Shown here: positions 3,339 through 52,881 of the stretch, one piece after another
How positions within the stretch are numbered: the stretch's first letter is position 1
Layout of the letters: each line of letters begins with the position of its first letter
Origin: Octopus bimaculoides
Lineage: Eukaryota
Assembly: GCF_001194135.2 (NCBI RefSeq)
Contig: NC_068995.1
Span: forward strand, 55,117,601 to 55,181,600
Length of the DNA stretch: 64,000 nt
Reading direction: 5' to 3'
Position numbers and translations under genes: made by a program
Notes under the pieces: generated by a model
The model's database searches: none
What the model was told of the DNA's origin: nothing
The model's input: only the letters and a program-made list of their open reading frames with translations

Positions 3339-3549
3339 AAAGGCGGCGAGCTAGACGCAAACTTAGCACCCGGGCGAAACGCTTAGTGGTATTCCGTCTG
3401 CCTTTACGTTTTGATTTCTAATTCCCTCGACTTTGCCTTTCATCCTTTCGGATTCGATAAATTAAGTACCAGTTGCGTACTGAGGTCGATCTAATCGACT
3501 GGCCCTCTTCCCCCAAAATTCCGGCCTAGTGCCTAGGGTAGAAAAGAAT
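3339..3549 (+). mobile_element. SINE family 1, near full length
   Basis: aaggcggcgagct...ttagcac...gcctttcatcctttcgg..tcgataaattaagtaccagttgcgtactg...gtagaaaagaat. Recurs many times in the window. Confidence 0.85.
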
Positions 3550-4910: not shown

Positions 4911-6133
4911 GTGATGTTAGCTTAAAATTACCTAATTTATATATGAAATCAAAGGTTTATATTTAATTTGATATATAGAGATTTCAGATATAGAGAAAAG
5001 AGAAATTTTATTTCAAAAATTACATAAATCAAATTCGGATTAGAATTTCGTAATTTCATTATTTTAGTAAAATGTACATACAAGAAAGAAAGTGTAACTA
5101 ACAACTACTGTAAATGAGAACGTGGGGGATATTTTCACTATCGCACCTGAAAAATACAGCGGAAGAGTAAAATTGAATGTAAACAATTATAGAAATGCGT
5201 ATTTCAAAATAAAATTGAGCATCGCTTACTCATTTATCACATAATAATTCATGCAAAATTGTTGAAGGGAAAGTAACTGAAACTGAAATTATCTTTACTG
5301 ACATAATAATATTTATACAATTAAATGACAACTCCCGAGTTTAATGGTGTGACCAAATACACAGGTTGGATTTGTGTCCATATCCTGAGTAATACATGTA
5401 GTAACGAGATATTTAACAATGTGTACTTCAATTTGTTGTACGTATATTATGAGGAAAGATTTCATTTCTTAACTCTCTTGGAAGCGAATATTGGACAACA
5501 TAATGTAAACACATTATAACATAATTCATTTAAATAAATTTTTGATTTTTACATTTATCATTGCTTGAATAGGATGAGAAATTTGCTGAACATATTTGTA
5601 TTTAACGTGTTAGCAAAATGTGGAGAGGCATTTTATGAAAGTTTCAGCAAAAATTTAAAATCGACAATATCTTACACTTTTGGAATATGACATAGAGATA
5701 GATGACAGAATGGAGAAGTAAATAAGAATAAAAAACGCCAGTCCTGACGAAATTTAAAAGATTTTATCAAAAATATCTGTTGTTGTCTTCTGTAAGTTTG
5801 ATATCTCAGGATTTTAATTTTGGAATCAGAAAACATACTTTCGTGGTGTTTGCAGTCAAATAAAGTATGATTTGTTTTAGCGATAACATGATTCTACTGG
5901 TGTACTAAATAACAATTAAATGTGCATTTATGAAATAAAATTGAACAATATGTTATAGTTCGCTTCCATTTTGTGAGTTAGATGATTTTGTCTGCTTGTG
6001 TATAAAATGCAATAATGAAAATGTAATCAAAACTGCTATGCCTCACAAATATATATTTTTTTACGACATTTTCTATAAAAACATCAACCGATTGATGCAC
6101 GTAAAGGAATGGTTTCAAACAAATGCAACTAAC

Positions 6134-6192
6134 CAGTTTTTCCAGAGTCAAGATTTTGTTCGTTTAAGCTCTGGGATTTGATGTTACAGAAC
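6134..6192 (-). CDS. Possible gene A downstream exon, 59 nt, phase 2-1, (K)FCNIKSQSLNEQNLDSGKT
   Basis: Strong acceptor cattttcctatttcag|G and donor G|GTTAGT. Only the phase-2 start frame is open, but the exon is asymmetric. Confidence 0.35.
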
Positions 6193-8121: not shown

Positions 8122-8214
8122 TTGTGCTCGTCAGCGGTCATTTTCTTATTGTTGGCCAAACATTTCAGCTTATATTGCTGGAAGTCTTCAATCACAAACT
8201 TGAAAGATCTCAAA
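8122..8214 (-). CDS. Gene A exon 7, 93 nt, phase 2-2, LRSFKFVIEDFQQYKLKCLANNKKMTADEH(K/N)
   Basis: ttccttcgtttcttgtttcaag|TTTGAG...GAGCACAA|GTGAGT. Only the phase-2 frame is open. Confidence 0.75.
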
Positions 8215-9457
8215 CTTGAAACAAGAAACGAAGGAAATGTAATATTTTAGCTAATCACGGGAGAAAAAGATGTCTGGATTTATGTTTGAAAACTTTGGAT
8301 AAACAACATTTTATAAGCACCAAAATAAAGCATAAGATGTGGCAACATTTATTGAAATGTAACATTTAAAAAATATTTTCTGCGGTTTCATTCTTTTCCA
8401 TATGTTCTATGTTTTATTTATTTTTTCGAACGAGTACAGGTCTTAAAGTATAGTTTCTGTATCTATTGAATACAATATAACATTATTTATAGCTTATAAT
8501 TTTTTCATCATTCTATTCTCTTTCTCATCTTAACTTTCACTTCTACTCTCCCTATTTCAAATAAGCTTGGAAGTTTCTGCAGTGTCAATCAACGTAATAT
8601 ATTTTTCAGGATAATGAATCACACCACATATATCTGGCTCAAAAACACATGTATAGGTTGTATGGCGTGCTTCCAAATTTTCTAAAGCATAAGAAAAAAT
8701 GTGCAGATGGAATATTGAGGTTTGAGATGATTTTAGAAGATATACAAAAAATTCGAAATGAAATGTTTCAAGAAATGGCCGTAAAACTTTCTCTTCATAT
8801 TCTCCGCTTTCTAAATCATTTATGCAAGCACGTGATAATTCACATGGTGTGAATTTGGAGAGCAATCTGTTCCTTGATTTTCATGCTCAGTTTATGGATT
8901 TGATTAATTCGTTGAAACATTTGCATCAGTAGAATTCATTAGATGTAATATTTATAGACATATGGTTTCCTAGTAAATTTGATTATCAAAAGACAAGACA
9001 AATTTGAACGTGTTTTGTTCTTTTTCTCTATATAGGAAGAAGAGGAAATGCGGAACACTTTAAAGTATAAAATATTCATACAAGTTCCAAATGTTGAATT
9101 ATCATTATTTTTATTAACTTCTTTAGTACCGTTAAACTGTAATAGATACTATGGGATGTGACTGATATCTATTCGTTACATTAAGATATAGATGTATACT
9201 TACAAACGCCGGTCTCCTAGGAGAACAACAGTGATCTTATCCTTTGTGACCTTCATACTAAAATGGAAAGTTTGGAAATAATACTGCTATTCATTTTTAT
9301 TGGTACAAAATACAATTACCATCGAAGTCTAGTTTTTGATTAGTGCGCGACATAAGACAGTGTATACATAATCTCATATTCGAATTAAAATTATGAAAAT
9401 AGAATTAAATGAAAATGTCTGTACATGTTTGCATGTGTGAGTGAATATGTATGACAA

Positions 9458-9795: not shown

Positions 9796-9829
9796 ATGCA
9801 TGTCATTTCCCCTATTATGTATATATATA

Positions 9830-10241
9830 ATCATAAATATACAGGGATTAGCATTGAGTTGCTTCTCCAACATACTGAAAATTTAGAAATAGCAGTCAAA
9901 GAACTACTGCTTCTAAACTACAAATTTTTCTCTAAACGGATGGCGATATTTATGGCACACATAGAACAAAAAACCGGAGGGAAAAGCATAAACAAAACAA
10001 GTCTTTAGTTAATTGGATACAAATCGTTTCATGGTTAAGCGAAAAGCTTCGTATCCAATTAACTAAAGACTTGTTTTGTTTATGCTTTTCCCTCCGGTTT
10101 TTTGTTCTATGTGTGCCATAAATATCGCCATCCGTTTAGAGAAAAATTTGTAGTTTAGAATCAGTAGTTCTTTGACTGCTATTTCTAAATTTTCAGTATG
10201 TTGGAGAAGCAACTCAATGCTAATCCCTGTATATTTATGAT
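9830..10241. repeat. Near-perfect palindrome, 191-bp arms and a 30-bp loop
   Basis: 9830-10020 is the reverse complement of 10051-10241. I saw one mismatch. Confidence 0.9.
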
Positions 10242-10715
10242 GATAAATGGTTTTACCGATAAAGGTTTTTTCATACTGAACTACTTGGCAAAATTGCTAA
10301 TTATTAATTGACGATTCCCTGCCCTTATTCTTGGATATTATGTATATATACATGCATACATATATGTATATATATATATATATATATATACATGTACACA
10401 CAAACATACGCACTCACACTAATACACACACACGCGCATATATATTTAATCTCGATTTATACATGTAGATCCGTGCCCAGTAAACAGAAACGTTCAGGAA
10501 ACGGGCAGCTCGTTGTTACAATATTTGCTTGTATTAACACTTACAGAAGCACACTTACATAATGCCACACATACGCGTGTGTACATGTGTGTTGTAACAA
10601 GGATAAATACATGCGTATATGTACTAATAATTATAAACTACAAGCCACAAGATAACAGAAGATGAATATTGAAGTTAACAAATGAATTAATAAGGGATAT
10701 CAAAAAAGAACTTAC

Positions 10716-10742
10716 TCCTCCCAATCATTGACATTTGGTAAT
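10716..10742 (-). CDS. Gene A exon 6, 27 nt, phase 2-2, LPNVNDWE(D)
   Basis: tttcctttgattttcag|A TTA CCA AAT GTC AAT GAT TGG GAG GA|GTAAGT. Confidence 0.75.
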
Positions 10743-11580: not shown

Positions 11581-11613
11581 TCAGTTGTGCTGCTGCCGCC
11601 ATCTTTATTACTG
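11581..11613 (-). CDS. Gene A exon 5, 33 nt (30 nt with the second CAG acceptor), phase 2-2, SNKDGGSSTT(E)
   Basis: gttttcctttacattcag|CAG|T AAT AAA GAT GGC GGC AGC AGC ACA ACT GA|GTAAGT. Confidence 0.75.
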
Positions 11614-12262: not shown

Positions 12263-12298
12263 TCTCCTACACCTAGGAATCCTGTCAGGCCGTCGGAT
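12263..12298 (-). CDS. Gene A exon 4, 36 nt, phase 2-2, SDGLTGFLGVG(D)
   Basis: gttaatatttttcag|A TCC GAC GGC CTG ACA GGA TTC CTA GGT GTA GGA GA|GTAAGT. Shares GFLG with exon 3. Confidence 0.78.
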
Positions 12299-12949
12299 CT
12301 GAAAAATATTAACGTATAAACAATTATTTCATTCTGAAAAATAAATATTATATATATATATATATATATATGAGTCTGCTGAGATAATTGGAATACACAA
12401 CACCTAATAACCTGACGGTATAACTTTTCTACCCCGCTGATGAGATTTTTGCCTAATACAATCATTTAATTACTGTAATTTAATATTTAGTCTAAATTGC
12501 AACAGCTGTAAGAGAACATGTTGGATTTTTGCAGTTATTAAATTATACTAATGCTACATTTCCATTTTTGAAATTTTCTTTATATGTATATANNNNNNNN
12601 NNNNNNNNNNNNNNNNNNNNNNNNNNNNNNNNNNNNNNNNNNNNNNNNNNNNNNNNNNNNNNNNNNNNNNNNNNNNNNNNNNNNNNNNNNNNNNNNNNNN
12701 NNNNNNNNNNNNNNNNNNNNNNNNNNNNNNNNNNNNNNNNNNNNNNNNNNNNNNNNNNNNNNNNNNNNNATATATAAGAACACATTAAATCCTTCAATTT
12801 CACTTTAACATTTAAATTTAATTTGTATCAAAATATTTTCGACGCATTGAAACCGCGGCCTATTCACTGATAAAACTTCGTGCTGCATGAATTTGTGTCA
12901 ATGAACAGGTCGCTGTGAAACTATATGAAAGTGTTTTCAAAATACTTAC

Positions 12950-12988
12950 GCAATATTTCCTAAGAAACCTGCAAATACTTCTCGTAAA
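12950..12988 (-). CDS. Gene A exon 3, 39 nt, phase 2-2, LREVFAGFLGNI(A)
   Basis: ttattatttcatttcag|T TTA CGA GAA GTA TTT GCA GGT TTC TTA GGA AAT ATT GC|GTAAGT. Confidence 0.78.
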
Positions 12989-14097
12989 CTGAAATGAAAT
13001 AATAAATTTAGTACATCAGTTATATGATATAAATGAACATAAGTGAATGACATTTTAGGGTATAATAGCTATTCCATTTAATTACTCACGATTAACATTC
13101 AATGTCATTTTAAGTAATAGTTGATTATATATCTTTAAAAGGTTGCGAAGTTTCTCCAATTAGATAGTCACGAAATAGTGACCAAATAATTCTGCTTATG
13201 TATTTAGATTGAATGGACCACGAATGTACGTACGTGCCTGCATGTGTGTGCGAGTGTGTGTTTGTGTGTGTACGTGTATGCGTGTGTGAGAGAGAGAGTT
13301 TGTGTGTTTGTGTCTGTGTGTTTATGTGGTTGTGTTTGTGTATTAGTATGTGTCTGTAAGTTTTAAACTATTTTCGGTATCGAGACAACCTTTTCGGGAA
13401 GTTCCATAGATTTGAGGAGTATAAATACCTTTTCAACACAATTTCACTCAGGTCTTTATAGCTTTCTATTGTTAATTAGAATATTAAGGATTGTTTAACT
13501 ATGCATTTGATACCTGGATCAGTGAACACTGGACGCCATCTGCAGCAACACATTTTGATATGCAGGGAGCAACTGAAGCAAGTAAGACACCCTCGTAAAC
13601 CACTGGATTGGTAATAGTTATGGACAAGTGATTGAAGTCGACTGTTTGTAAGACAGTAGGAATCTTTAAGAATGACAGGATGTTTCTTGATTAAATGTAA
13701 ACTTAATTCATCTATACGTTAAAGTAAATTATGTTAACAGTTACTCAAATTCATTCCCACTACTTTGTGCGAAAGTACATTTATATGCGTGCAGGCATCT
13801 CGAGAGTCTTTCAGAAATTCTATTAATGATCTTTTCATTGGTCCACATTATAGCCAGGGATTCCTTGGATTCCTAAGAGTCGGCATCTCTTGTAAATGAT
13901 ATTGTATATATTTTTTTTTTGGGGGGGGGCGTGTCTTACTATAGAGCAGGTTATGTTATACTGAATTTTATCTTACTTCAGTCGGCTCACATAATCGGCC
14001 AAACATGTTGAATGTCTCTAATTGATTCTCTTGAAGCTGGCGACATGGTTGCATAACGTTTCTTAAATATATATATAGCCTATATACATATAAGTAA

Positions 14098-14143
<46 letters not shown>

Positions 14144-14366
14144 AAAGAAAGAAAGGATAAAGAGAACAATGGCACAGTTAGAATTATATTTTATGTATAA
14201 AGTCTTACAGCTGTTTCAGGGAAAATCCAATATATCCCTTCATCGGAGACGGTAATAGTGGAAGAATGGATTATTACATCTATAAGAGATTTGTAGTAAG
14301 AAGTGAGAGGGTTTGGTTGACTCCAATACACTTCATAACCTTTATGTGTATATATATATATATATG

Positions 14367-14413
<47 letters not shown>

Positions 14414-14814
14414 ATACATATATATGTGTGTGTGCGTGTGTATATATACATATATACATGTATATATTATGTATATGTATGTATATATGTGTGGATGTTT
14501 AGAAAATGTAATTCTTTATAGTTTTATCTACTTCCAGTCCCAACGTTTAAAGAATGCCTATTTTGTGTATACACCTGTAAATGATATTGTTATAGGAACA
14601 ACTTCTATATTAATATAAGCTAAAATTTAATAACTCACCCCTTCAATGCCACTTTTCCAAGAGCAGGTCTGTAAGGGAAAAAAAATAAAATCTTTCATAA
14701 ATTAAATATCGAGGAATTCATGTATAGGCACACACACCCCCACACACACACACACGCGCGCGGTCAAGGAATAGGGGCGATCCAATCCCGGCTAGAACAT
14801 TACTCAAATGAACT

Positions 14815-14876
<62 letters not shown>

Positions 14877-15040
14877 GTGTAGGTAACAATTAGAGGAGTT
14901 TAAATCCTCTAAGGGTTAATTATATAAAACGGTCGATTGATATATTGATATTTTATATTAGATTGATAATATGGAATGTATAATATGAAGGTATACAGAA
15001 CACATATTAAAATAATATTACATAAGAAAGTATAACTTAC

Positions 15041-15073
15041 ATGTTGCGTTTGCTCCTGTTACCTTTGTTTGTC
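15041..15073 (-). CDS. Gene A exon 2, 33 nt, phase 2-2, TNKGNRSKRN(I), containing an RxKR furin-type site
   Basis: gatgtttctttcattacag|G ACA AAC AAA GGT AAC AGG AGC AAA CGC AAC AT|GTAAGT. Confidence 0.75.
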
Positions 15074-15307
15074 CTGTAATGAAAGAAACATCAATAAAGT
15101 CAGAAATGAGATGGTTCGTAATTTGTTGAAGACACATGAGTAAAAATTACGTAATATGTTTTCTGTTTTAATATATAATTCGTAGTTTGATACTTACAAA
15201 ACTATGCAGACAACTCAACTGGACAAATATGTGGCAATGTAAATACTGTAAACTTCAGGTAGATTTATAATTCTAATTTGAGCCTGAAAGTTACATCTAA
15301 TGATAAA

Positions 15308-15497
15308 CGAGGGGGCTGCTGAAAAGTTCCTGGCTTTAGGAGTATCGCGAAATGTGCGGCTGGACGTCCAATCTTCCGTACTTAGAAAAACTGAAGGACC
15401 GCTGCAATAAGTGTGTGAATCTGAGAGGGAAATATGTTAACTAAAATCATAATTAACTGATTCTTATTCCCAAAGCCATGGACTTTTCAGCACACTC
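15308..15497 (+). mobile_element. Mariner-derived MITE / internally deleted element
   Basis: Imperfect terminal inverted repeats (gagggggctgctgaaaagttcctggcttt ... aaagccatggacttttcagcacactc). The interior encodes LEKLKDRCNKCVNLRGKYVN*, resembling the mariner transposase C-terminus. Confidence 0.8.
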
Positions 15498-15765
15498 ACA
15501 TATCATAAACTCAACAAATAGAGAAGGGAATTCCGTAGGTTGTGGAATTATACACCACTAAATGCTGTTTGATTGTCGTCTGATTTGTAGAAATAAATTT
15601 TATCCCAATATTATCTATGTGATGAATACCATATGCTACATATATAATAATTAATATGAATTAATATTTCCAAATTAATATAATCATATTGCAATTCAAA
15701 AGAGATTTAAAGATGTTACACAGGCATAATCAGATTATTTCATAAATTAAATATTAATGACTTAC

Positions 15766-15863
15766 CGATTAGATTTTTTCTCCTCCAGAATGTCCTCCGG
15801 AAAGGCAAATGGATCATCAAAAGTCACCAGAAAGCAAGCGATGGCATTTCTAAATGTTTTCAT
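15766..15863 (-). CDS. Gene A exon 1 from the ATG at 15863, MKTFRNAIACFLVTFDDPFAFPEDILEEKKSN(R). Alternatively a 150-nt internal exon, 15915-15766.
   Basis: Donor CG|GTAAGT at 15765, phase 2. The frame is open from an in-frame acceptor (tcatattcacag|A at 15915), and TATATAAAA lies 43 nt upstream of the ATG, so both readings are possible. Confidence 0.65.
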
Positions 15864-15905
15864 TTCATATTGTTTGAAGTGGTAAATCGGAAACAGTAGT
15901 AGGCG

Positions 15906-15914
15906 TTTTATATA
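15906..15914 (-). promoter_or_regulatory. Possible TATA box (TATATAAAA) for gene A
   Basis: Lies 43 nt upstream of the ATG at 15863. It overlaps the alternative internal-exon reading. Confidence 0.35.
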
Positions 15915-16145
15915 TCTGTGAATATGACATGGACTTTTAATTAGAAGAATAATATGAACAATACATAAATACATATTGATATATGCACTCATTAACTACC
16001 ATATATATATTGGTGGAATTCAGCTTGCAGCAAGAACAGAGCCAACTATTGTTTCTATTACATCGACATATTTGGAAATATAGAAAATGTCCTTATTGAT
16101 ATCTCCGTAGATATTTAATCTCTTCTTTTCATTCTTATACACATA

Positions 16146-16560: not shown

Positions 16561-17439
16561 AGGAGGAGGTGGAGATTGTGGAGGAGAATATCCTTTTTGT
16601 ATATATTCATTTTTGTTTTAATTGAATTTCAGCATCAATTTTCTATATTTTTATTATTGTTTCATAGCAAATAATATTACGATACTGTTTGATAGTCAAA
16701 AATATTTCCTGCCATCTGGTTAATTTTCAATAACGTTTTGGTGTATTTCTCAAATTTCTGTATGGTAACTTGAAGATTTTCTTAACGTAGGCTTTCGTAT
16801 TACAATTTTCTCGAGTAAATATATCCATTTTATTCCTTCAATTAAAACATGAAATCAATGGGATTCTTAGGTGTTTATGTACTTATTGTCAAAAACGTAA
16901 ACGCGACCATTTTGATGCTTACATGCGAATACACAATAGAAATTAAATCTGCTTACGGTCCATCCCAAACCTTTTCCATAGCGTCCAAAATTATCGTATG
17001 AGAATAGGCCAGTCGTTGCTCGAATTCTTCAATGTCCGAGCACGTTTCCCAGCTAAAATGTATGAATGATATAAGGAAATATTTAGTGAGAGGCTTAATA
17101 ATTTATTATAAGTTAAAATCATAAGTATATGTATAAAGGAGAGAAAATGGTGAGGAACTGCTAGGTTTCGCTTCTTCAAAATTTATGAGGTACAAAAAGA
17201 ACATGCTATAATTGTGTTCAGAGTTACACTGATTCATCTTTAGAAAATGTCGTTTAATTTATACAACAGGAGCAACTAATCTTTAACAGTTGCACTAAAA
17301 TGTCTCGTCTGTTGCTAACCGAGCTTTGGGAGTTTTTCTCATTGCCGATGTACACTTAGAATTAATCAAATAATTGTCAAATATTTTCTCTCTCATAATA
17401 ATGATTTCAAATTTTTGCAACAAGGGCAGCTCGAGGAAG

Positions 17440-18949: not shown

Positions 18950-19163
18950 AGGGCCGGTGAGCTGGCAGAAGCGTTAGCACGCTGGGTGAACTGCTAAGTG
19001 ATATTTCGTCTGTTTTTACGTTCTGAGTTCAAATTCCAACGAAGTCGACTTTACCTTTCATACTTTCGGGGTCGATAAATCAAGTACCAAATGCGTACTG
19101 GGGTCGCTCTAATCGACTGACCCCCTCCTCAGAAATTGCGGGCCTTGTGCCTAGAATAGAAAA
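18950..19163 (+). mobile_element. SINE family 1
   Basis: gagctggcagaagcgttagcacg...gtcgactttacctttcatactttcggggtcgataaat...gccttgtgcctag. Confidence 0.85.
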
Positions 19164-19829
19164 TAATATGTATTAACCGTCCAATAATAAGATTGTCAAA
19201 TTCCATTGCACAGACAACCAATGAATGATTCATTTCTGAATATATTAGGTGTGTTTCCAAATATGATAAAACTTATCAAGACGGGTTTCATATACACATG
19301 TATGTGTAAGTGTGATTGTTTGAAGGTGATATTTTTCTACTACTTAAGTAAACATAAGCATACCTCATAAAGAAGTTTTCCCACGCATGCGCTCTTGTCT
19401 TGTATTTCATGAGACGTAATTCATTATCCTTTTCCTTAGCAGAAGACCTAGAAAGAAAATAGTGAGAATAGAAATTCATAATTTCAGTGTCCAAAGGTTA
19501 CTTTAAGTTTAGATGAAATAAAGTACTAAGGATTGAAAAGTTTTCCTAATATTCATAATGTTTTCTCTTGATTTTGTGACATTAAATTTTCCTGTGATTC
19601 GTTGGTGTCATTTCGTACCATACTCTAATATTTACTGACCTAGCTATAATTCTCCAAATTGCATCGGAGTTCTTCACTCTTCTCTCTCTTTAAGGGTCCA
19701 AAAGAAAAAAAAGGAACAGGGAAAAAAAACTAAAGAAGGAAAAGAATAACCAAGACCATGTGTATGATTACTTTGTTGATATATTCGTATTTATATGAAA
19801 CTATATCTCAGGAAACTTAGATACGTTTC

Positions 19830-20189: not shown

Positions 20190-20960
20190 CTGGCGGTATA
20201 TTCTCCACATTGTGCAAATAATGTATCGCTTATGGCGGTGCAGGTTAGAAGAGTTTAAATGCTGGTGTAATGCAAGGAGATACCCTCTTTCCAAACCTCT
20301 TTATGCCATGTCTTGAAATGATCATGAAGAGCATCGACTGGCCGGGTGGCGTGATCATCAACGGTGAACAAGAAACGCATTTCCGAATTGCAGCTGTTAT
20401 GGTACACATCATTGAAACCGTAGACCAGGTGCAGATACTGCGAACAGAGTTGAACTCCCAGAAATTATAAGAATGTCTTACAATGAACTGCATAAAAACA
20501 AAATATTCTCAGCCGGAAGTCATAGCATAGGAAGTCATTGGATGCAAAGAATTCAAGGCGTTAAAAGTATAATTCTATAGTGAATAATGCAAGATATAGA
20601 CGCTGAAATCACAAGCAGGATAAGGGCAGAATTCAAGGCATTTAACAGAGCTGGACAGATACATATGAGCCAAACACTTGAATAGCATCCTCCTACCATC
20701 ACACTAATATGCAACTGGGACGAATTTCACTACGAAGAAGATAGAAAATCGAATAACTACGACACAATGGGGCTACTACCATTAAGGGAGTATATTGGAA
20801 ACGAGATAATTCGAGAACGGAATGGAGAGATCGTTGTGATTGCAGAGTTCCTAAAGCACAAGGTTCGTTGAGCTAGACATGGTGCACAGGTAGATCCTTG
20901 CATTTGCCGATTGTTATCCAAAAGGATATTTTCAAGGCCTCCATAACAATGAGTAGCACT
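20190..20960 (+). mobile_element. Degraded RTE-clade LINE reverse transcriptase fragment
   Basis: Translates to GVMQGDTLFPNLFMPCLEMIMKSIDWPGGVIINGEQETHFRIA (RT QGD motif through to the degenerate FADD region), then DIDAEITSRIR and HKVR*ARH, with stops and frameshifts. Confidence 0.85.
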
Positions 20961-21689
20961 TTGATCATGCAATATGCAACATACAATATATATATATATA
21001 TANNNNNNNNNNNNNNNNNNNNNNNNNNNNNNNNNNNNNNNNNNNNNNNNNNNNNNNNNNNNNNNNNNNNNNNNNNNNNNNNNNNNNNNNNNNNNNNNNN
21101 NNNNNNNNNNNNNNNNNNNNNNNNNNNNNNNNNNNNNNNNNNNNNNNNNNNNNNNNNNNNNNNNNNNNNNNNNNNNNNNNNNNNNNNNNNNNNNNNNNNN
21201 NNNNNNNNNNNNNNNNNNNNNNNNNNNNNNNNNNNNNNNNNNNNNNNNNNNNNNNNNNNNNNNNNNNNNNNNNNNNNNNNNNNNNNNNNNNNNNNNNNNN
21301 NNNNNNNNNNNNNNNNNNNNNNNNNNNNNNNNNNNNNNNNNNNNNNNNNNNNNNNNNNNNNNNNNNNNNNNNNNNNNNNNNNNNNNNNNNNNNNNNNNNN
21401 NNNNNNNNNNNNNNNNNNNNNNNNNNNNNNNNNNNNNNNNNNNNNNNNNNNNNNNNNNNNNNNNNNNNNNNNNNNNNNNNNNNNNNNNNNNNNNNNNNNN
21501 NNNNNNNNNNNNNNNNNNNNNNNNNNNNNNNNNNNNNNNNNNNNNNNNNNNNNNNNNNNNNNNNNNNNNNNNNNNNNNNNNNNNNNNNNNNNNNNNNNNN
21601 TATATATATATATATATATATGTATATATAGATTTTAGCATGAGTAGCTTTTGTTAAAAATAATCTTTACAAATCGTTTAAACGTGGCT

Positions 21690-21880: not shown

Positions 21881-22629
21881 GTTTGTATTTTTCGAAAAAA
21901 CATTTTCTCTATTATAAATTATTTATTGTAAATAATAAATTTAAGTATACACCCAGAATAATGCCTAATAGCAGTTTTCTGTGAATCGATTTTGATAAAA
22001 ACAATATTCCAAGGTGATTTGCACACTACGGCAACACAATTGTTGTTTTCATTATTCCGTGTAACGTCCTTTCGTTTTTATTTCAGATTCTTCAGTTTTT
22101 GCGTGAACTACGTTGATAGTTTTGAATAAAAATAGCTCATCTAATATGTTTCTTCAGAACATTAAGGGGAATGATATACATTTAGCATACATTGAATATA
22201 TATTGAACATAACACCATGATAAAATTATAACATTTATTGACATAATGAAATATTTAGCCACATGAGCACCATTTCGTCAGATAACTTCAAAAACCCTGG
22301 ACAAGTTGTCATATAGATAGTAAGACATACACAGTTTCTACTTGTGAAAGGATTTGAATTTGATATTGAAAATTTACATAAAAACTCAATTTAATACATC
22401 CACACGTACACATACACGTTTTTGCGTTTATATACGCACACGTATATGCACATAATATACCCGCCATCATACAGGTGCGCTTGCATCATCCCCGGTGTGT
22501 ACACATCTAAATTTATGTGGTCATTTTACCTCGTTAGTTATTCATGCAGTAACATTTTGTTAATAATTTTCTAGTGACAACCGCTTATTCAAATGTGTAT
22601 ATTTCAAACTAATTGTATATATATATATC

Positions 22630-23105: not shown

Positions 23106-23310
23106 GCTAGTATACATAGGTAAAACAACATAAATATCAAGAGAGGATAATCGGCAAACAGCTGGACAAGCTGTGATGTAATAGCAGAACGATAAGAGCA
23201 GTGGATAAACGTAATGGCATGCGACAAAAACAAATAATAATTAACGTAAAAAGCAGTGCACAGGTAACTGTCCACCGACTAAAAGAACAAGAAATGTAAA
23301 ATAGACTTAC

Positions 23311-23347
23311 GTTTCAGTGGAAACTCTTAGCAATGTAACGAGTAAAA
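23311..23347 (-). CDS. Chain B stop exon, copy 2, 37 nt, FTRYIAKSFH*
   Basis: Same as 24593-24629 except ACT (Thr) in place of GCT (Ala). Both splice sites are intact. Confidence 0.5.
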
Positions 23348-24264
23348 CTGAAGCTAGAAACAAACACGCAAAGGAAACGAACTGAAGGCAATAAACGGAG
23401 TAGTTAGAGGGAGGCGTATAAGCCTGTGAAGTATTAAGAGTAATGTATATGATACATCAAAAATTTTTGTTAAAGATAATTGTAAACAGTGACGAAAATC
23501 ACAAAGATCAACGCAAATTCACAAAAATATTCTGAAAATATCAAAAAATAATAAAAGTAATGACTAATTAAATGGAGGTCTCCATCAAAACTCCGCCAAA
23601 TGTTGAAGTATGTTCCGGGACGGAATATCTGTCCCACCCTTCTTTTTTTTTATTGTATCCCACATTCTGAAGCACATTCAATTCGCATTAAGAAAAATCT
23701 CTCCATCTTACCCTTATATCGTACTTCTCACATAATTTTGTTCTTTTGATTTATATTCCTTTATGTGAAATTAAAATAAAATTCAAGATATTTGGCTGTT
23801 AATTCNNNNNNNNNNNNNNNNNNNNNNNNNNNNNNNNNNNNNNNNNNNNNNNNNNNNNNNNNNNNNNNNNNNNNNNNNNNNNNNNNNNNNNNNNNNNNNN
23901 NNNNNNNNNNNNNNNNNNNNNNNNNNNNNNNNNNNNNNNNNNNNNNNNNNNNNNNNNNNNNNNATATATAAATATATACAGAGAGAGAGAGAGAGAAAGT
24001 GAGAGAGTGAGAGAGAGAGAGAAAGTGAGAGAGTGAGAGAGAGAGAGAATGTGAGAGAGTGAGAGAGAGAGACACACACACACATATGCATATTTGTGTT
24101 TGTGTGTATGTGTGTGCCTGTCTGTGTCTGTGTGTGTTCTTTGTGTGTCTATGTGTATGTGTGGTTTAATCAATAATAACAATCAAGAATTAACACATTA
24201 ATCATTAATTTAGGATTACATCATACAAAGGCCGACACTACCCGTGGCAAACAATTGTTTACGA

Positions 24265-24362: not shown

Positions 24363-24592
24363 TCTCTATCTATCTATTTCTGTATCAGTGGGTATATATA
24401 GGTAAAACAACATAAATATCAAGAGAGGATAATTGGCAAACAGCTGGACAAGTTGTGATGTAATAACAGAACGATAAGAGCAATGGATAAACGTAATGGC
24501 ATGCGACAAAAACAAATAATAATTAACGTAAAAAGCAGTGCACAGGTAACTGTACGCCGACTAAAAGAACAAGAAATGTAAAATAGACTTAC

Positions 24593-24629
24593 GTTTCAGT
24601 GGAAACTCTTAGCAATGTAACGAGCAAAA
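24593..24629 (-). CDS. Chain B stop exon, copy 1, 37 nt, FARYIAKSFH*
   Basis: tttctagcttcag|T TTT GCT CGT TAC ATT GCT AAG AGT TTC CAC TGA AAC|GTAAGT. Confidence 0.55.
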
Positions 24630-25446
24630 CTGAAGCTAGAAACAAACACGCAAAGGAAACGAACTTTACGTCTTTAAGTGAAGGCAATAAACGGAGTAGT
24701 TAGAGGGAGGCGTATAAGCTTATGAAGTATTAAGAGTAAATGAAGTTGTTTGTAACAGTATGTTTAAAACTTAGATTTATGGGATAGGACTTCCATAATG
24801 ACTCAGTTTAAACTTTAAAATCTAAATATCGGTGCTTAGTCCTAATTTTTTAAAAAGTCTAAAGAAATGTTTCCTATGCATTTCTAATATGATATCATTT
24901 CTAACACTCGTAATAATACATCGGGATTTATAAATAAAAGTAGAAAATATCGCAAATCAGCTAGAACATCGAAATTAACATTAAAATTAGAAAGAGAATG
25001 AAAGTAAAATATGTATGAATATTGCTGTACGCTCTTACCATAATTTTAAATTCAACAAAAACAACCTATTTTAATTAATTAAACCAATAAGTATTTATCG
25101 TTTAATCACTCTGCAAAAAAAGCATTGATAAATACAATTTTGACAAATATTTCATTAATTTGTGGTTGAGAGTCAAATGTCTAAGATACTTCTCGCATTG
25201 TGTGTTTGAATTCAAAATTATGAAACTGTTATAACTAATATAAATTATCGAAATGAGAATAACTCTGCTGAAACCAAAACTAGAAGAAATTAAAGAAAAT
25301 ATACAAGTTAAGCACATATTCTATGATATATATATATATATCGAAATACGCTTATGCAACTGATTGAAATTTGAGATAATTTTCTATCCCTCTTATAGCG
25401 ATTACAAAAAAAAAAAAAAAAAAAAAAAAACTGTGAAATTTCATAA

Positions 25447-28749: not shown

Positions 28750-28950
28750 GCAGTGAACCGGCAAAACCGGTCAGCATTGTAAGCGAAATACTTAGCGGTA
28801 TTCTAACCGTCTCATGCTTTGAGTTCAAATTTCGATGAGGTCGACTTTCATCCTTTCGGGCTCGATAAAGTAAGTAACAATTAAGCAATGGAGTTGATGT
28901 AATCCGCACACCCCGTTCTCCAAATTGTCTGCCTTGAGCCAAAATGTGAA
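28750..28950 (+). mobile_element. SINE family 1, degenerate
   Basis: acttagcggtatt...tgagttcaaatt...gtcgactttcatcctttcggg.tcgataaa. Confidence 0.75.
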
Positions 28951-36494: not shown

Positions 36495-37160
36495 GGTGGG
36501 GGTGGCACTCTGGCGCTTACGACGTCGAGGGTTCCAGTTGATCCGATCAACGGAACAGCCTGCTCGTGAAATTAACGTGCAAGTGGCTGAGCACTCCACA
36601 GACACGTGTACCCTTAACGTAGTTCTCGGGGATATTCAGCATGACTCAGTGTGACAAGGCTGCCCCTTTGAAGAAACAGGAAGTAAGAGAAAGTTGTGGT
36701 GAAAGAGTACAGCAGGATTCGCCACCATCCCCTGCCGGAGCCTCGTGGAGCTTTAGGTGTTTTCACTCAATAAACACTCACAACGCCTGGTCTGGGAATA
36801 TATATATTGCGCCTTTAGTCGAGCAAATCAACCCCAGGTCTTGTTCTCTGGAAGCCTAGTACTTATTCTATCGGTCTCTTATGCCGAACCGCTAAGTTAT
36901 GAGTAAGTAAACACACCAGCATCGGTTGTCAACCGATGGTGGGGGGACAGAAACAGGCACACAAGCATGTACACACACATACATATATATACATATATAC
37001 GACGCGCTTCTTTCAGTTTCTGTCTACCAAATCCATTCACAAGTCTTTGGTCGGCCTGAGGCTATAGTAGATGACACTTGCCCAGGGTGCCACGTAGTGG
37101 GACTGATCCCGGAACCAATGTGGTTCGTCAGCAATGTACTTGCCTCACAGCCACTCCTAC
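36495..37160. mobile_element. Cluster of three SINEs: plus 36495-36680, minus 36680-36800, family 2 on minus 36820-37160
   Basis: The higher-GC block contains gagggttccagttgatccgatcaacggaacagcc. The next block is shared with 48790-48850. The last is the reverse complement of the family 2 copies at 16240 and 18385. Confidence 0.75.
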
Positions 37161-38735
37161 GCTTGTATATGTACATACCTAAATCTATACGTGTTTATAT
37201 AAGCATACGTGGGCACAGAATGTCATGAAACGTGTACAACAAAAAATACGAAGCAGGAGTACATGGAACATGAACAATTCTTTCGAACAACGAAAGACAC
37301 AAATGGGGGGGGGGAAACAACATAAAGGACAACCCTTCATCAGTTTTGTTGTTAAATGCTCGAAATACGAGACTAGAAAAAACAGCCACCGACTGATGGC
37401 AGGTCGTCCTTTGTGTTGTTTCTTTTGTTTTCCATTTGTGTCTTGCGTTGTTTGAAATAATAGTTCAATAGTCCATGTTCTATAAAGATCGTAAATTCAA
37501 CGCTGGTTCGTTTTGATCATAGTTCTGCTTCATGTGGTCAATACCGTGCATAACCCAGCGGAAAATGGAATTATTTGTTGTATAACGTACATTGCCTGAC
37601 ATTTAAAATCAAGTTAGATTATATAGGATAACACAAGTAGTGGAATTAATTATGCCTCGTCAACAAACGCGTCAGTGTCACCTAATGTCACCTCATCTTG
37701 AATACGAAATCTGATATTGATTGTATCGATGACGAGGTCCCTTTACTTCTGAGAACTACTTCATAGACTTCGACTATTGTCTCAAATACCAAGTGGGCAT
37801 TGACATGATAGGGAAGGGCATTTAAATTCCTTTTTCCACGAAATATATACGTGTGTGTGGTGGAGGGTGGATGGTTAATGTTACTGGAAAATTTATTAAT
37901 TGTTATAGGCTTTACGAATTTAAATCAATGTCTCATCAAATTGTCGGCAAATCGTTTTAGAGCGGACAGTGCACCACAGAGAAACTGTTTAGAACAATAA
38001 CTTTGACATTATTAAATTGAAAGCCTTATATTACTAAATTGAAAGCTGTACTTATTTAGGAACAAAAAATATAATGGGAATGTTCCAATAACAGGAACTT
38101 TGCAAATGTTTGTTGCTAATTATCGAAAACAAAAAATTAAAAAATAAATAGGTTTTCGACGTCTATAAATATAGTAGATAAAATCGATCTTCAGCCAACA
38201 AAAATGTGCGTATAGTAGCGACAACACACGCCTCAAAACCCACTTAAAATAATTCAATTAATATTGTATACCTTGTAGATCGATTATATGTAAACATTAT
38301 GACATATATTGCTGATTTTACTCACATTGGGTACATTTTCGAAAATAAGAGACAATAAAATAAACAGCTCTATACTACATAAAAAATAAGAACATCGTTT
38401 CATAGACATATAAAGCAATAATTCTTCCCAGGGGTACTTAAATATCCTACTAAACATCAATTTTTATTTCTAAAGTCCTTTCTCTAAGTGTCCTCGTTTC
38501 GTAAGAGTAAGTGTCACTGTGTGTTTTCCGTCCACCCATTGATGCTATGAAGCCAAATAAAATTTTAACAATTGAATTATGGAGTGATATAACCGAATCA
38601 GCAAGAAATTTATATAAGGAACATGAACTGGCGTCAGACACACTGGCTCGAGTTAAATGTTACATTTAGAAAAATAGTATGAACGGCTTTTGAATTTGAC
38701 ATATATCCTTATCAAGTAGATATTGTCTATGAATA

Positions 38736-50994: not shown

Positions 50995-51175
50995 CTAAGT
51001 TGGGTGATCTGGCAGAAGAGTTAGCACGCTGGGAAAAATGCTTATTGGCATTTCGGCCGTCCACACGTTCTGAGTTCCATTCCCGGCGAGGCAGACTTTG
51101 CTTTTCATCCTTTCGGAGTCGATAGAATTAGTACCAGTCAAATACGGGGGTCAATTTAATCGACTGTTCACTTTC
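50995..51175 (+). mobile_element. SINE family 1
   Basis: ctggcagaagagttagcacgctggg...cagactttgcttttcatcctttcggagtcgata. Confidence 0.8.
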
Positions 51176-51954: not shown

Positions 51955-52150
51955 TTCCCCCCACCGCTTCGCTTGGTAACCTATGTTGGTATGTTGACGT
52001 CCCCGCAACTTAGCAGTTCGGCAAAAGAGACCGATAGAATAAGTACGAGGCTTACAAAGAATAAGTCCTGGGGTCGATTCGTTCGACAAAAGGTTCTGCT
52101 CCAGCATGGCCGCAGTCAAATGACTGAAACGAGTAACAGAATAAAAGAAT
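51955..52150 (+). mobile_element. SINE family 2, 3' part
   Basis: gtccccgcaacttagcagttcggcaaaagagaccgatagaataagtac...ccagcatggccgcagtcaaatgactgaaac. Confidence 0.8.
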
Positions 52151-52881
52151 ATATATATATACAACGCTATTGCTCTAGAGAAATACACTGCTGATTAATA
52201 ACATTCTTGTATCAAATAAGAAGAAATAATACTAAATAATAAATGTTTTTGCTTCATTCATTTCAGGACGAGGTAATACATCAATATTATATCCTTAATA
52301 AAAGCATGAAGAGATAGCAGCTTGTTTTATAAAAGTTAGATGAGCACACATCATTACAATAGAAACGACCAAACAAAAACGCATGATAACTAAATCAGAT
52401 AAATCTCTTTTGTGGGAATATTTCCTTCATAAATGAGCCCATATTGGTGTAGTACAAAACGAACACGAAAATAAATACATAAAAGAAGCTTTCATTTCCT
52501 TGTACAAGCAGCTCGCGGCAATATTCATATTACCTATAAGAGTTACTATCAAATACTAGTCTTTAGACGCGTATACTTTTTCTTTTGAGTATTTTCTTTT
52601 GAAAATATGTAGGATTAAGAATAGATCAGTAGAAAAAATAAAAACATTTTGATCGGAAATGTTTTCTAGATCCTGCTTCGAAATTAAACCTTGAGCGAAA
52701 TGTTAGCTTTAAAGATATGTGTGTATGGGTGTGTATGAGTGTGTGTGTGTATGTGTGCGTGTGTGTTTGTGTGTCTTTATGTGTATAAACATATATGTAT
52801 ACACACATACATATATATTCATACGTGTATATATATAGACACACTTTCATATATACATATATATATATTTATGTATACATA

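Follow-up and report, generated by a model that had tools for sequence, protein, structure and literature searches.

The 64,000-nucleotide (nt) stretch of Octopus bimaculoides DNA analysed here (contig NC_068995.1, positions 55,117,601 to 55,181,600; hereafter the window) carries the gene LOC106881475 on its minus strand, and the region flagged in an earlier note as a possible peptide precursor (12263–15863) corresponds to exons 4–8 of the 14 coding exons of this gene. LOC106881475 was already annotated as uncharacterised, and it belongs to a family without described relatives. The members of this family share a conserved order of elements, i.e., a putative signal peptide, a helical domain, an invariant R-x-K-R (RxKR) site, a neutral amphipathic and Gly-rich helix, a second domain, and a tail resembling a glycosylphosphatidylinositol (GPI) signal. 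On balance, we lean slightly towards reading the product as a secretory, convertase-cut protein whose membrane-anchored C-terminal fragment would begin with the neutral amphipathic Gly-rich helix. The small toxin or antimicrobial-peptide precursor initially proposed for this region was, in that form, largely refuted.

Identity and exon structure of the gene

An exhaustive phmmer search with the 33-amino-acid (aa) exon peptide from the flagged region yielded a 100% match to residues 91–123 of a 283-aa protein, which a cluster look-up placed under O. bimaculoides LOC106881475 ("uncharacterized protein"), together with UniProt entry A0A0L8FT47. Exact open reading frame (ORF) look-ups of this 33-aa peptide and of a 119-aa ORF of the window gave no match. 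The RefSeq isoforms of LOC106881475 span 194–284 aa, with XP_014787355/56 measuring 284 and 283 aa, and XP_052829319/21/23/24 measuring 259, 258, 219, and 194 aa. Moreover, the corresponding locus in assembly GCA_001194135.2 (CM046615.1, ~55,117,601–55,181,600; locus L003) was 100% identical to the window. The assignment of the gene to LOC106881475 is virtually certain.

The 14 coding exons extend over window positions ~21600–5064 on the minus strand, within AT-rich DNA (~31% GC over the window) in which microsatellites are abundant and assembly gaps numerous. At each exon in the chain, the acceptor is an AG preceded by a pyrimidine tract and the donor matches GT[AG]AGT, all junctions being in frame with phase-2 introns, and the exons used by the RefSeq models are exactly those read from the window. 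Spliced mapping to the orthologous locus of O. sinensis (L001) and to the paralogous locus LOC106876345 (L002) returned equal exon sizes and phases, all micro-exons included. The resulting gene model comprises the following features:

21003–21600, minus strand: assembly gap, likely hiding coding exon 1 (start codon and signal peptide), from flanking synteny with the O. sinensis orthologue.
19364–19447, minus strand: coding exon 2, 84 nt, SSAKEKDNELRLMKYKTRAHAWENFFM, from spliced mapping of the RefSeq protein; contains the family-invariant MKY.R.HAWENFFM.
16957–17052, minus strand: coding exon 3, 96 nt, SWETCSDIEEFEQRLAYSHTIILDAMEKVWDGP, from spliced mapping and alignment; skipped in RefSeq isoform X3.
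15766–15915, minus strand: coding exon 4, 150 nt, YIKRLLLFPIYHFKQYE-MKTFRNAIACFLVTFDDPFAFPEDILEEKKSNR, from spliced mapping; contains the ATG (15863–15861) from which the earlier note started.
15041–15073, minus strand: micro-exon 5, 33 nt, TNKGNRSKRN, from splice sites and spliced mapping; RSKR codons at 15057–15046.
14639–14668, minus strand: micro-exon 6, 30 nt, (I)PALGKVALK, from a splice-site scan and spliced mapping; overlooked in the earlier note.
12950–12988, minus strand: micro-exon 7, 39 nt, (G)LREVFAGFLGNI, from spliced mapping; first GFLG at 12969–12958, with F149, F152, and L153 invariant.
12593–12769, no strand: assembly gap lying in a (TA)n tract of intron 7; non-coding to judge from the homologues.
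12263–12298, minus strand: micro-exon 8, 36 nt, (A)SDGLTGFLGVG, from spliced mapping; second GFLG at 12282–12271, with L161, L165, G166, and G168 invariant.
11581–11613, minus strand: micro-exon 9, 33 or 30 nt, (D)SNKDGGSSTT, from spliced mapping; tandem NAGNAG acceptor at 11613/11610.
10716–10742, minus strand: micro-exon 10, 27 nt, (E)LPNVNDWE, from a splice-site scan and spliced mapping.
9204–9257, minus strand: micro-exon 11, 54 nt, (D)MKVTKDKITVVLLGDRR, from spliced mapping; within the stretch of the gene under the strongest constraint (dN/dS, the ratio of non-synonymous to synonymous substitution rates, 0.29).
8122–8214, minus strand: coding exon 12, 93 nt, (F)LRSFKFVIEDFQQYKLKCLANNKKMTADEHK, from spliced mapping.
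6134–6192, minus strand: coding exon 13, 59 nt, FCNIKSQSLNEQNLDSGKT, from spliced mapping.
5064–5146, minus strand: last coding exon 14, 83 nt including the TAA stop, GAIVKISPTFSFTVVVSYTFFLVCTFY, from spliced mapping; hydrophobic C-terminus, resembling a GPI signal or a tail anchor.

The peptides quoted in the earlier note were recovered on the minus strand where it had located them (MKTFRNAIACFLVTFDDPFAFPEDILEEKKSNR at 15863–15766, LREVFAGFLGNI at 12988–12950, and SDGLTGFLGVG at 12298–12263), and RSKR (15057–15046) indeed sits on a micro-exon of its own, i.e., the 33-nt exon 15073–15041. While the quoted exons thus proved to be real and bounded by canonical splice sites, the chain into which they had been joined skipped the 30-nt exon 14668–14639 (PALGKVALK) and was wrong at its N-terminus and at its end. 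Since this micro-exon intervenes in all RefSeq isoforms, and with the same size in the orthologue and the paralogue, the junction is RSKR-N-IPALGKVALK-G-LREVF rather than RSKR-NILREVF, and NILREVF had to be discarded as the N-terminus after cleavage.

At the other end of the gene, exon 11 was considered as the terminal exon, as was an exon of two codons near 10637, and both were rejected, given that RefSeq and the orthologue show three more exons; six coding exons follow beyond 12263, with the stop codon at 5066–5064. The gap at 12593–12769 sits between the 39-nt and 36-nt exons, which join in phase whatever the length of the gap. Because neither the O. sinensis orthologue nor the O. bimaculoides paralogue has extra residues or an extra exon at the exon 7/8 junction, this gap, to judge from these homologues, conceals no coding sequence. 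No paralogue of the gene was found elsewhere in the 64-kb window, and an Rfam scan of the window gave no match.

An invariant RxKR site followed by a Gly-rich segment

Throughout the seven sequences of the family alignment (A1), R129, K131, and R132 were invariant (7/7, as RSKR or RRKR), with variable flanking residues. The conservation of RSKR in orthologues, on which the earlier note had made its reading depend, was therefore confirmed. Apart from this motif, the RSKR micro-exon evolves faster than any other part of the gene (dN ~0.54–0.59). A second, tandem RxKR occurs in LOC106876345 and LOC115220522 (RPKR/RRKR-SV-RSKR). Cleavage by a convertase would tolerate the residues that follow the site, which are small at P1′ (A/N) and aliphatic at P2′ (I/L). 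From the sequence features at hand, cleavage of the protein at RxKR appears fairly probable.

Conservation of R-x-K-R is in itself no proof of cleavage, however, and the protein might instead be secretory and anchored but uncleaved, with the basic cluster serving glycosaminoglycan or lipid binding or a structural contact, and with the GFLG segment as a buried helix of a single-chain fold. The extended basic patch of the two tandem-site members (KR.KRSVRSKR) would suit such a function, and the invariant hydrophobic positions within 137–153 lie on one helical face, as packing would need. Nevertheless, the invariant part is exactly the four-residue furin consensus rather than a general basic character, and it stands out amid a fast-evolving stretch and is followed by the convertase-compatible P1′ and P2′ residues. 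We consider an uncleaved protein possible but rather unlikely.

With the missed exon included, the sequence after the site reads RSKR-NIPALGKVALKGLREVFAGFLG, also given as RSKR-NIPALGKVALKGLREVFAGFLGNIASDGLTGFLGVGD, and L137, G138, F149, F152, L153, L161, L165, G166, and G168 are invariant within it. The GFLG-repeat segment described in the earlier note is accordingly a conserved hydrophobic, Gly-rich segment placed directly after the site, but it contains only two GFLG copies. In the window copy, the first 18 residues have a hydrophobic moment of ~0.49–0.50, comparable with magainin 2 and melittin computed alike, and across the family the mean moment of these residues ranges from 0.26 to 0.51. 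The second half of the segment (AGFLGNIASDGLTGFLGV) has a hydrophobicity (H) of 0.54 and a moment of 0.28, between the values computed alike for the fusion peptides of influenza HA2 and human immunodeficiency virus (HIV) gp41. The net charge of the 36-residue segment is –1 to +1 in six family members.

The amphipathicity of the first 18 residues would fit a small precursor, in which a start at MKTFRN and an acidic propiece are followed by RSKR and by a released antimicrobial, cytolytic, or venom peptide of ~26–36 aa. Yet the peptide would be nearly neutral, and no conserved downstream (dibasic) processing site that would release the 36-mer was present in the family alignment. Furthermore, the ORF runs ~115 residues further, through two invariant Cys and up to a hydrophobic anchor-like end, which does not agree with the layout of antimicrobial or cytolytic precursors to which the region had been likened.

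The putative signal-peptide exon and the gap at 21003–21600

The small precursor depends likewise on MKTFRN, which the earlier note had taken for the start of a hydrophobic N-terminus with a signal peptide. In fact, the MKTFRN segment lies ~90 residues into the protein, downstream of at least two conserved coding exons, and all homologues have Lys or Asn instead of its Met. The ~75 residues upstream of it are among the best conserved (MKY.R.HAWENFFM, AYSH, and YI.R.LLFPI.HFK in alignment A1), the upstream half of exon 4 being nearly invariant across the family, and the hydrophobic stretch downstream of it reads FKNAMGCFQKIFED in paralogues. Since the Met is replaced, the upstream sequence conserved, and the hydrophobic core not conserved, MKTFRN neither marks the start of translation nor constitutes a signal peptide. 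The acidic propeptide fared no better, as the orthologue has KDTSED in place of EDILEE and the paralogues have a 4-residue deletion there. RefSeq isoform X5 (194 aa) does start at the MKTFRN Met, but this is best explained as an annotation fallback, with exon 1 lying in a gap. A small precursor thus appears extremely improbable. The motif TATATAAAA, ~50 nt upstream of the MKTFRN ATG, was considered as a TATA box and rejected, being coding sequence (YIKR...).

Four full-length homologues open with a separate exon of 50–53 nt that encodes a signal-peptide-like sequence, i.e., MPIIYIIFGLIIHCVPYT in the O. sinensis orthologue, and MRGYIICFLIILYLSYT and MIRLILGLIILCVPYP in other homologues, with 10-residue hydrophobic cores of mean Kyte-Doolittle hydropathy 2.95–3.5. 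In the orthologue, this exon 1 (L001 5001–5053) lies between blocks that align to window positions 22579–21610 and 20991–20888. Because orthologue DNA aligns on both sides of the gap at 21003–21600, exon 1 of the window copy maps into this gap, which is located ~5 kb upstream of the flagged stretch and persists in the chromosome-level assembly. Most likely, the gap hides the signal-peptide exon of LOC106881475. The secreted nature of the protein put forward in the earlier note was hence upheld, on account of the exon kept in four homologues and of its counterpart in the window mapping to the gap, and the members of this octopus family are likely to be secretory-pathway proteins.

The placement of exon 1 in the gap also accounts for the diverse starts of the annotated models. 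Older RefSeq models begin with a 13-codon exon at 20334–20296 on the minus strand (MLFMIISRHGIKR), antisense to the remnant of a long interspersed nuclear element (LINE) reverse transcriptase, whereas newer models begin at internal Met codons, isoform X5 doing so at MKTFRN. The LINE-antisense first exon is probably an annotation artefact. The reverse-transcriptase remnant itself is degenerate and covers 20249–20467 on the plus strand; a homologue search with it gave no match. With exon 1 placed in the gap by synteny, every current RefSeq isoform of LOC106881475 is most likely wrong at its N-terminus, being either truncated or, in the older models, given a transposon-derived start. Such an error could get the protein misclassified as non-secreted.

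If the protein had no signal peptide, it could start at an internal Met and be a cytosolic tail-anchored protein, inserted post-translationally by its C-terminal helix as SNAREs are. Indeed, no current RefSeq isoform of LOC106881475 has a signal peptide, a hydrophobic stretch ends the protein, and weak, sub-threshold matches to Syntaxin_2 were obtained in two paralogues (E-values of 0.007–0.075, 13–17 bits vs. a cut-off of 26.5). However, these Pfam matches are far below threshold, and the signal-peptide exon is kept in four family members, with an assembly gap at its position in the window. Moreover, a lumenal or extracellular location would be in keeping with the paired invariant Cys and the invariant RxKR. 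A cytosolic tail-anchored protein is therefore very improbable in our view.

The C-terminal part and its predicted anchor

The protein extends ~150 residues past RxKR, through an acidic Ser-rich linker and into a conserved region of ~55 residues that holds two invariant Cys (KCL and KFC) and gives way to a polar spacer and an invariant G-A..K (G257, A258, and K261 in A2 numbering). Altogether four Cys are invariant, arranged as two pairs with one pair in each predicted fragment. In 5/6 family proteins, the chain ends with an 18-residue hydrophobic stretch that lacks a charged tail. This end follows the partly invariant pattern S/D/T-G-A, 7–8 residues, and 18 hydrophobic residues to the terminus, and the C-terminal tail is, as judged from sequence, probably a GPI-type signal or a tail helix.

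An Octopus-only family under moderate constraint

A search with the full-length protein matched Octopus proteins only, encoded by six genes, of which three are in O. bimaculoides and three in O. sinensis. Identity to the window copy was 76% for O. sinensis LOC115220626 (the syntenic orthologue), 59% for LOC115220522, and 55% for LOC115220523, and, within O. bimaculoides, 69% for LOC106876345 and 58% for LOC106881480. The orthologous locus L001 is colinear with window positions 23166–1257. On O. sinensis CM016874.1 (20.08–20.17 Mb), the orthologue LOC115220626 and LOC115220522 (locus L004) are convergent, tail-to-tail and ~19 kb apart, so that family members are clustered locally. Judging by its number, LOC106881480 may be placed in the same way in O. 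bimaculoides, a little before the start of the window.

By the Nei-Gojobori method, dN/dS was 0.48 between window and orthologue (dS 0.26) and 0.54 between window and paralogue, and fell to 0.33 in the N-terminal region and to 0.29, the minimum, around DMKVT..EHK. The gene is thus coding and under moderate purifying selection.

Pfam and PDB searches with stitched peptides of 69 and 79 aa gave no match, and no Pfam family exceeded its cut-off for the octopus family. The best Pfam matches (Syntaxin_2, MbeD_MobD, pAdhesive_17, and Pox_polyA_pol_N) were rejected, as they scored 12–17 bits vs. cut-offs of 21–27. PDB sequences gave no match to the family either, the only hit of a profile search having E = 1.4, and a scan of IMG/VR viral contigs with the family alignment revealed no relative. 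In the literature, no paper was found that names the LOC or UniProt identifiers, and none relevant on microexons in cephalopods. AlphaFold2, run on the 7-sequence alignment, produced an all-helical model of low confidence (helices 138–164, 204–225, and 264–282; mean predicted local distance difference test score (pLDDT) of 34 and predicted template modelling score (pTM) of 0.25), unusable for fold comparison.

Proposed processing and its analogues

In the processing that we propose, the ~284-aa product would enter the endoplasmic reticulum by means of an N-terminal signal peptide, encoded by the exon placed in the gap at 21003–21600. It would then fold into a helical N-terminal part of ~110 aa and a C-terminal part of ~150 aa, each with one invariant Cys pair, and would be held on the membrane by its hydrophobic C-terminal tail, most likely exchanged for a GPI anchor (S/D-G-A, a short spacer, and 18 hydrophobic residues). 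A furin-type proprotein convertase could subsequently cut after the invariant R-x-K-R, leaving an anchored fragment with the new N-terminus IPALGK.ALK....F.GFLGNIASDGL.GFLGIG, i.e., a neutral helix, amphipathic at first and then Gly-rich and hydrophobic. This new N-terminal helix would be the part likeliest to contact the membrane or a partner protein. The product may serve in adhesion, signalling, or membrane activity. This orphan, Octopus-only family offers a layout that is open to direct tests for convertase processing and membrane activity.

Several points weigh against this proposal. The signal-peptide exon of the window copy is unseen, in that it falls in the gap, and could have been lost, all current RefSeq isoforms starting downstream of it. 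The annotated models of two family members (P0012 and P0013) are devoid of part or all of the hydrophobic tail. With a dN/dS of ~0.5 and an exon identity close to the intron identity, constraint is only modest. Furthermore, the AlphaFold model (pLDDT 34) is too poor to judge the exposure of the RxKR loop, and the putative signal peptide, cleavage, and GPI anchor are all judged from sequence features alone.

The closest analogues are analogues of layout only, and the gene does not qualify as an antimicrobial-peptide precursor, a viral fusion protein, or a schistosome micro-exon gene. Convertase substrates that are membrane- or GPI-anchored include glypicans and repulsive guidance molecules. Like these, the octopus family would combine an N-terminal signal peptide, a conserved internal R-x-K/R-R, and a C-terminal hydrophobic signal of the GPI type, with a Cys pair in each predicted fragment. 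Unlike them, it displays no sequence or domain similarity to such substrates and is Octopus-restricted in the databases searched. In precursors of amphibian and invertebrate antimicrobial peptides, an amphipathic stretch that can form a helix likewise comes after a basic site, as in the window copy (moment ~0.5 over 18 residues). In the octopus protein, however, the predicted signal peptide is ~110 residues away from the site, a conserved domain with Cys residues stands where such precursors have a short acidic spacer, and the neutral peptide would not be released C-terminally from what is predicted to be a membrane-anchored protein.

At the sequence level, a convertase site directly before a Gly-rich hydrophobic segment is also found in class I viral fusion glycoproteins, e.g., REKR|AVGIGALFLGFLGAAG in HIV-1 gp160. 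By analogy, the cut and C-terminally anchored octopus fragment might insert its fusion-peptide-like N-terminus into an opposing membrane. Such a role would be in keeping with the conserved order of RxKR, a Gly-rich hydrophobic FLG..FLG segment, predicted downstream helices, and a predicted C-terminal membrane attachment, and with the intermediate position of the second half of the segment (H 0.54, moment 0.28) between influenza HA2 and HIV gp41. On the other hand, the octopus protein is far smaller, its ectodomain of ~110 residues being too short for classical heptad-repeat hairpins and showing no recognisable long heptad repeats, and its tail resembles a GPI signal more than it does a transmembrane helix. 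In addition, the gene is a cellular one with multiple introns (14 exons), and no similarity to viral proteins (IMG/VR contigs) or to Pfam families was detected. A fusogen-like mode of action is therefore improbable, and it is equally a long shot that this Octopus-restricted family represents convertase-activated, anchored proteins that expose a fusion-peptide-like N-terminus as endogenous membrane-fusing or membrane-perturbing effectors. Any specific membrane activity of the segment is doubtful.

In such an effector, the active segment would be pieced together from the symmetric micro-exons described below.

A cassette of symmetric micro-exons

The most unusual feature of the gene is this run of symmetric micro-exons. 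Each of exons 2–12 (84, 96, 150, 33, 30, 39, 36, 33, 27, 54, and 93 nt) has a length divisible by three, and all eleven are in phase 2, an arrangement that is unusual and is kept between paralogues. Seven of these consecutive exons, i.e., 7/14 coding exons, are micro-exons of 27–54 nt, together making up ~29% of the coding sequence (CDS). In 300 first-order Markov shuffles of the strand, the longest run of consecutive symmetric same-phase micro-exons was 3, vs. 7 in the gene, a length well beyond chance, and on the plus strand the longest symmetric exon chain was 1. Since exons 2–12 are all symmetric and in phase 2, the loss of any one of them by skipping would preserve the reading frame. The splice variation that is annotated consists of only one NAGNAG site and one skipped 96-nt exon; the former is the tandem acceptor (cag|cag) at micro-exon 9, with the isoform pairs of 284/283 and 259/258 aa differing by exactly its Ser.

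Schistosome micro-exon genes (MEGs), described as specific to Schistosomatidae, are defined by a CDS that consists mostly of 10–20 symmetric exons of 6–81 bp, by long introns, and by an N-terminal signal peptide (bioRxiv 10.1101/2023.06.21.545858). The octopus gene resembles them in its run of very short symmetric same-phase exons with long introns between, and in a product that would be secreted, is lineage-restricted and without known domain, and is hard to annotate. It differs from them in that micro-exons make up only half of its coding exons (7/14) and ~29% of its CDS, and in its limited annotated splice variation (the NAGNAG site and the skipped 96-nt exon). It also shares no sequence similarity with them and is a molluscan gene for which only Octopus relatives were found. 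That the window itself might be schistosome DNA, as the MEG-like exons had suggested, was rejected, since it is identical to an O. bimaculoides locus. As in schistosome MEGs, the segment after RxKR could in principle be varied by exon skipping. To our knowledge, such an exon architecture has been little described outside schistosomes.

The two GFLG micro-exons (39 nt at 12950–12988 and 36 nt at 12263–12298) share the core ..CAGG(T/A)TTC(T/C)TAGG.. and do not differ in phase. An ancient duplication of one exon could account for the similarity, but exons this short permit no significance test.

Further features of the window

Intron 10 contains an inverted repeat (9823–10030 and 10041–10248) with arms of 208 nt that are 97% complementary and separated by a 10-nt loop, which looks like a hairpin of the miniature inverted-repeat transposable element type. 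Short interspersed repeats of ~170 bp are located at 3340–3500, 18955–19126, 28783–28904, and 51003–51165, and also at 36810–37162 and 51969–52161, and recur in introns of the O. sinensis and paralogous loci. They seem similar to the short interspersed nuclear element that is abundant in octopus.

Finally, upstream of the gene, a segment of ~350 bp is present in two copies (23110–23443 and 24392–24739) that are ~93% identical. Each copy has, on the minus strand, an ORF of 37–43 nt (…LLVTLLRVSTE) bounded by a strong acceptor site and by GTAAGT as donor. These copies could represent a duplicated exon-like element, possibly a 5′ untranslated exon or part of a repeat.

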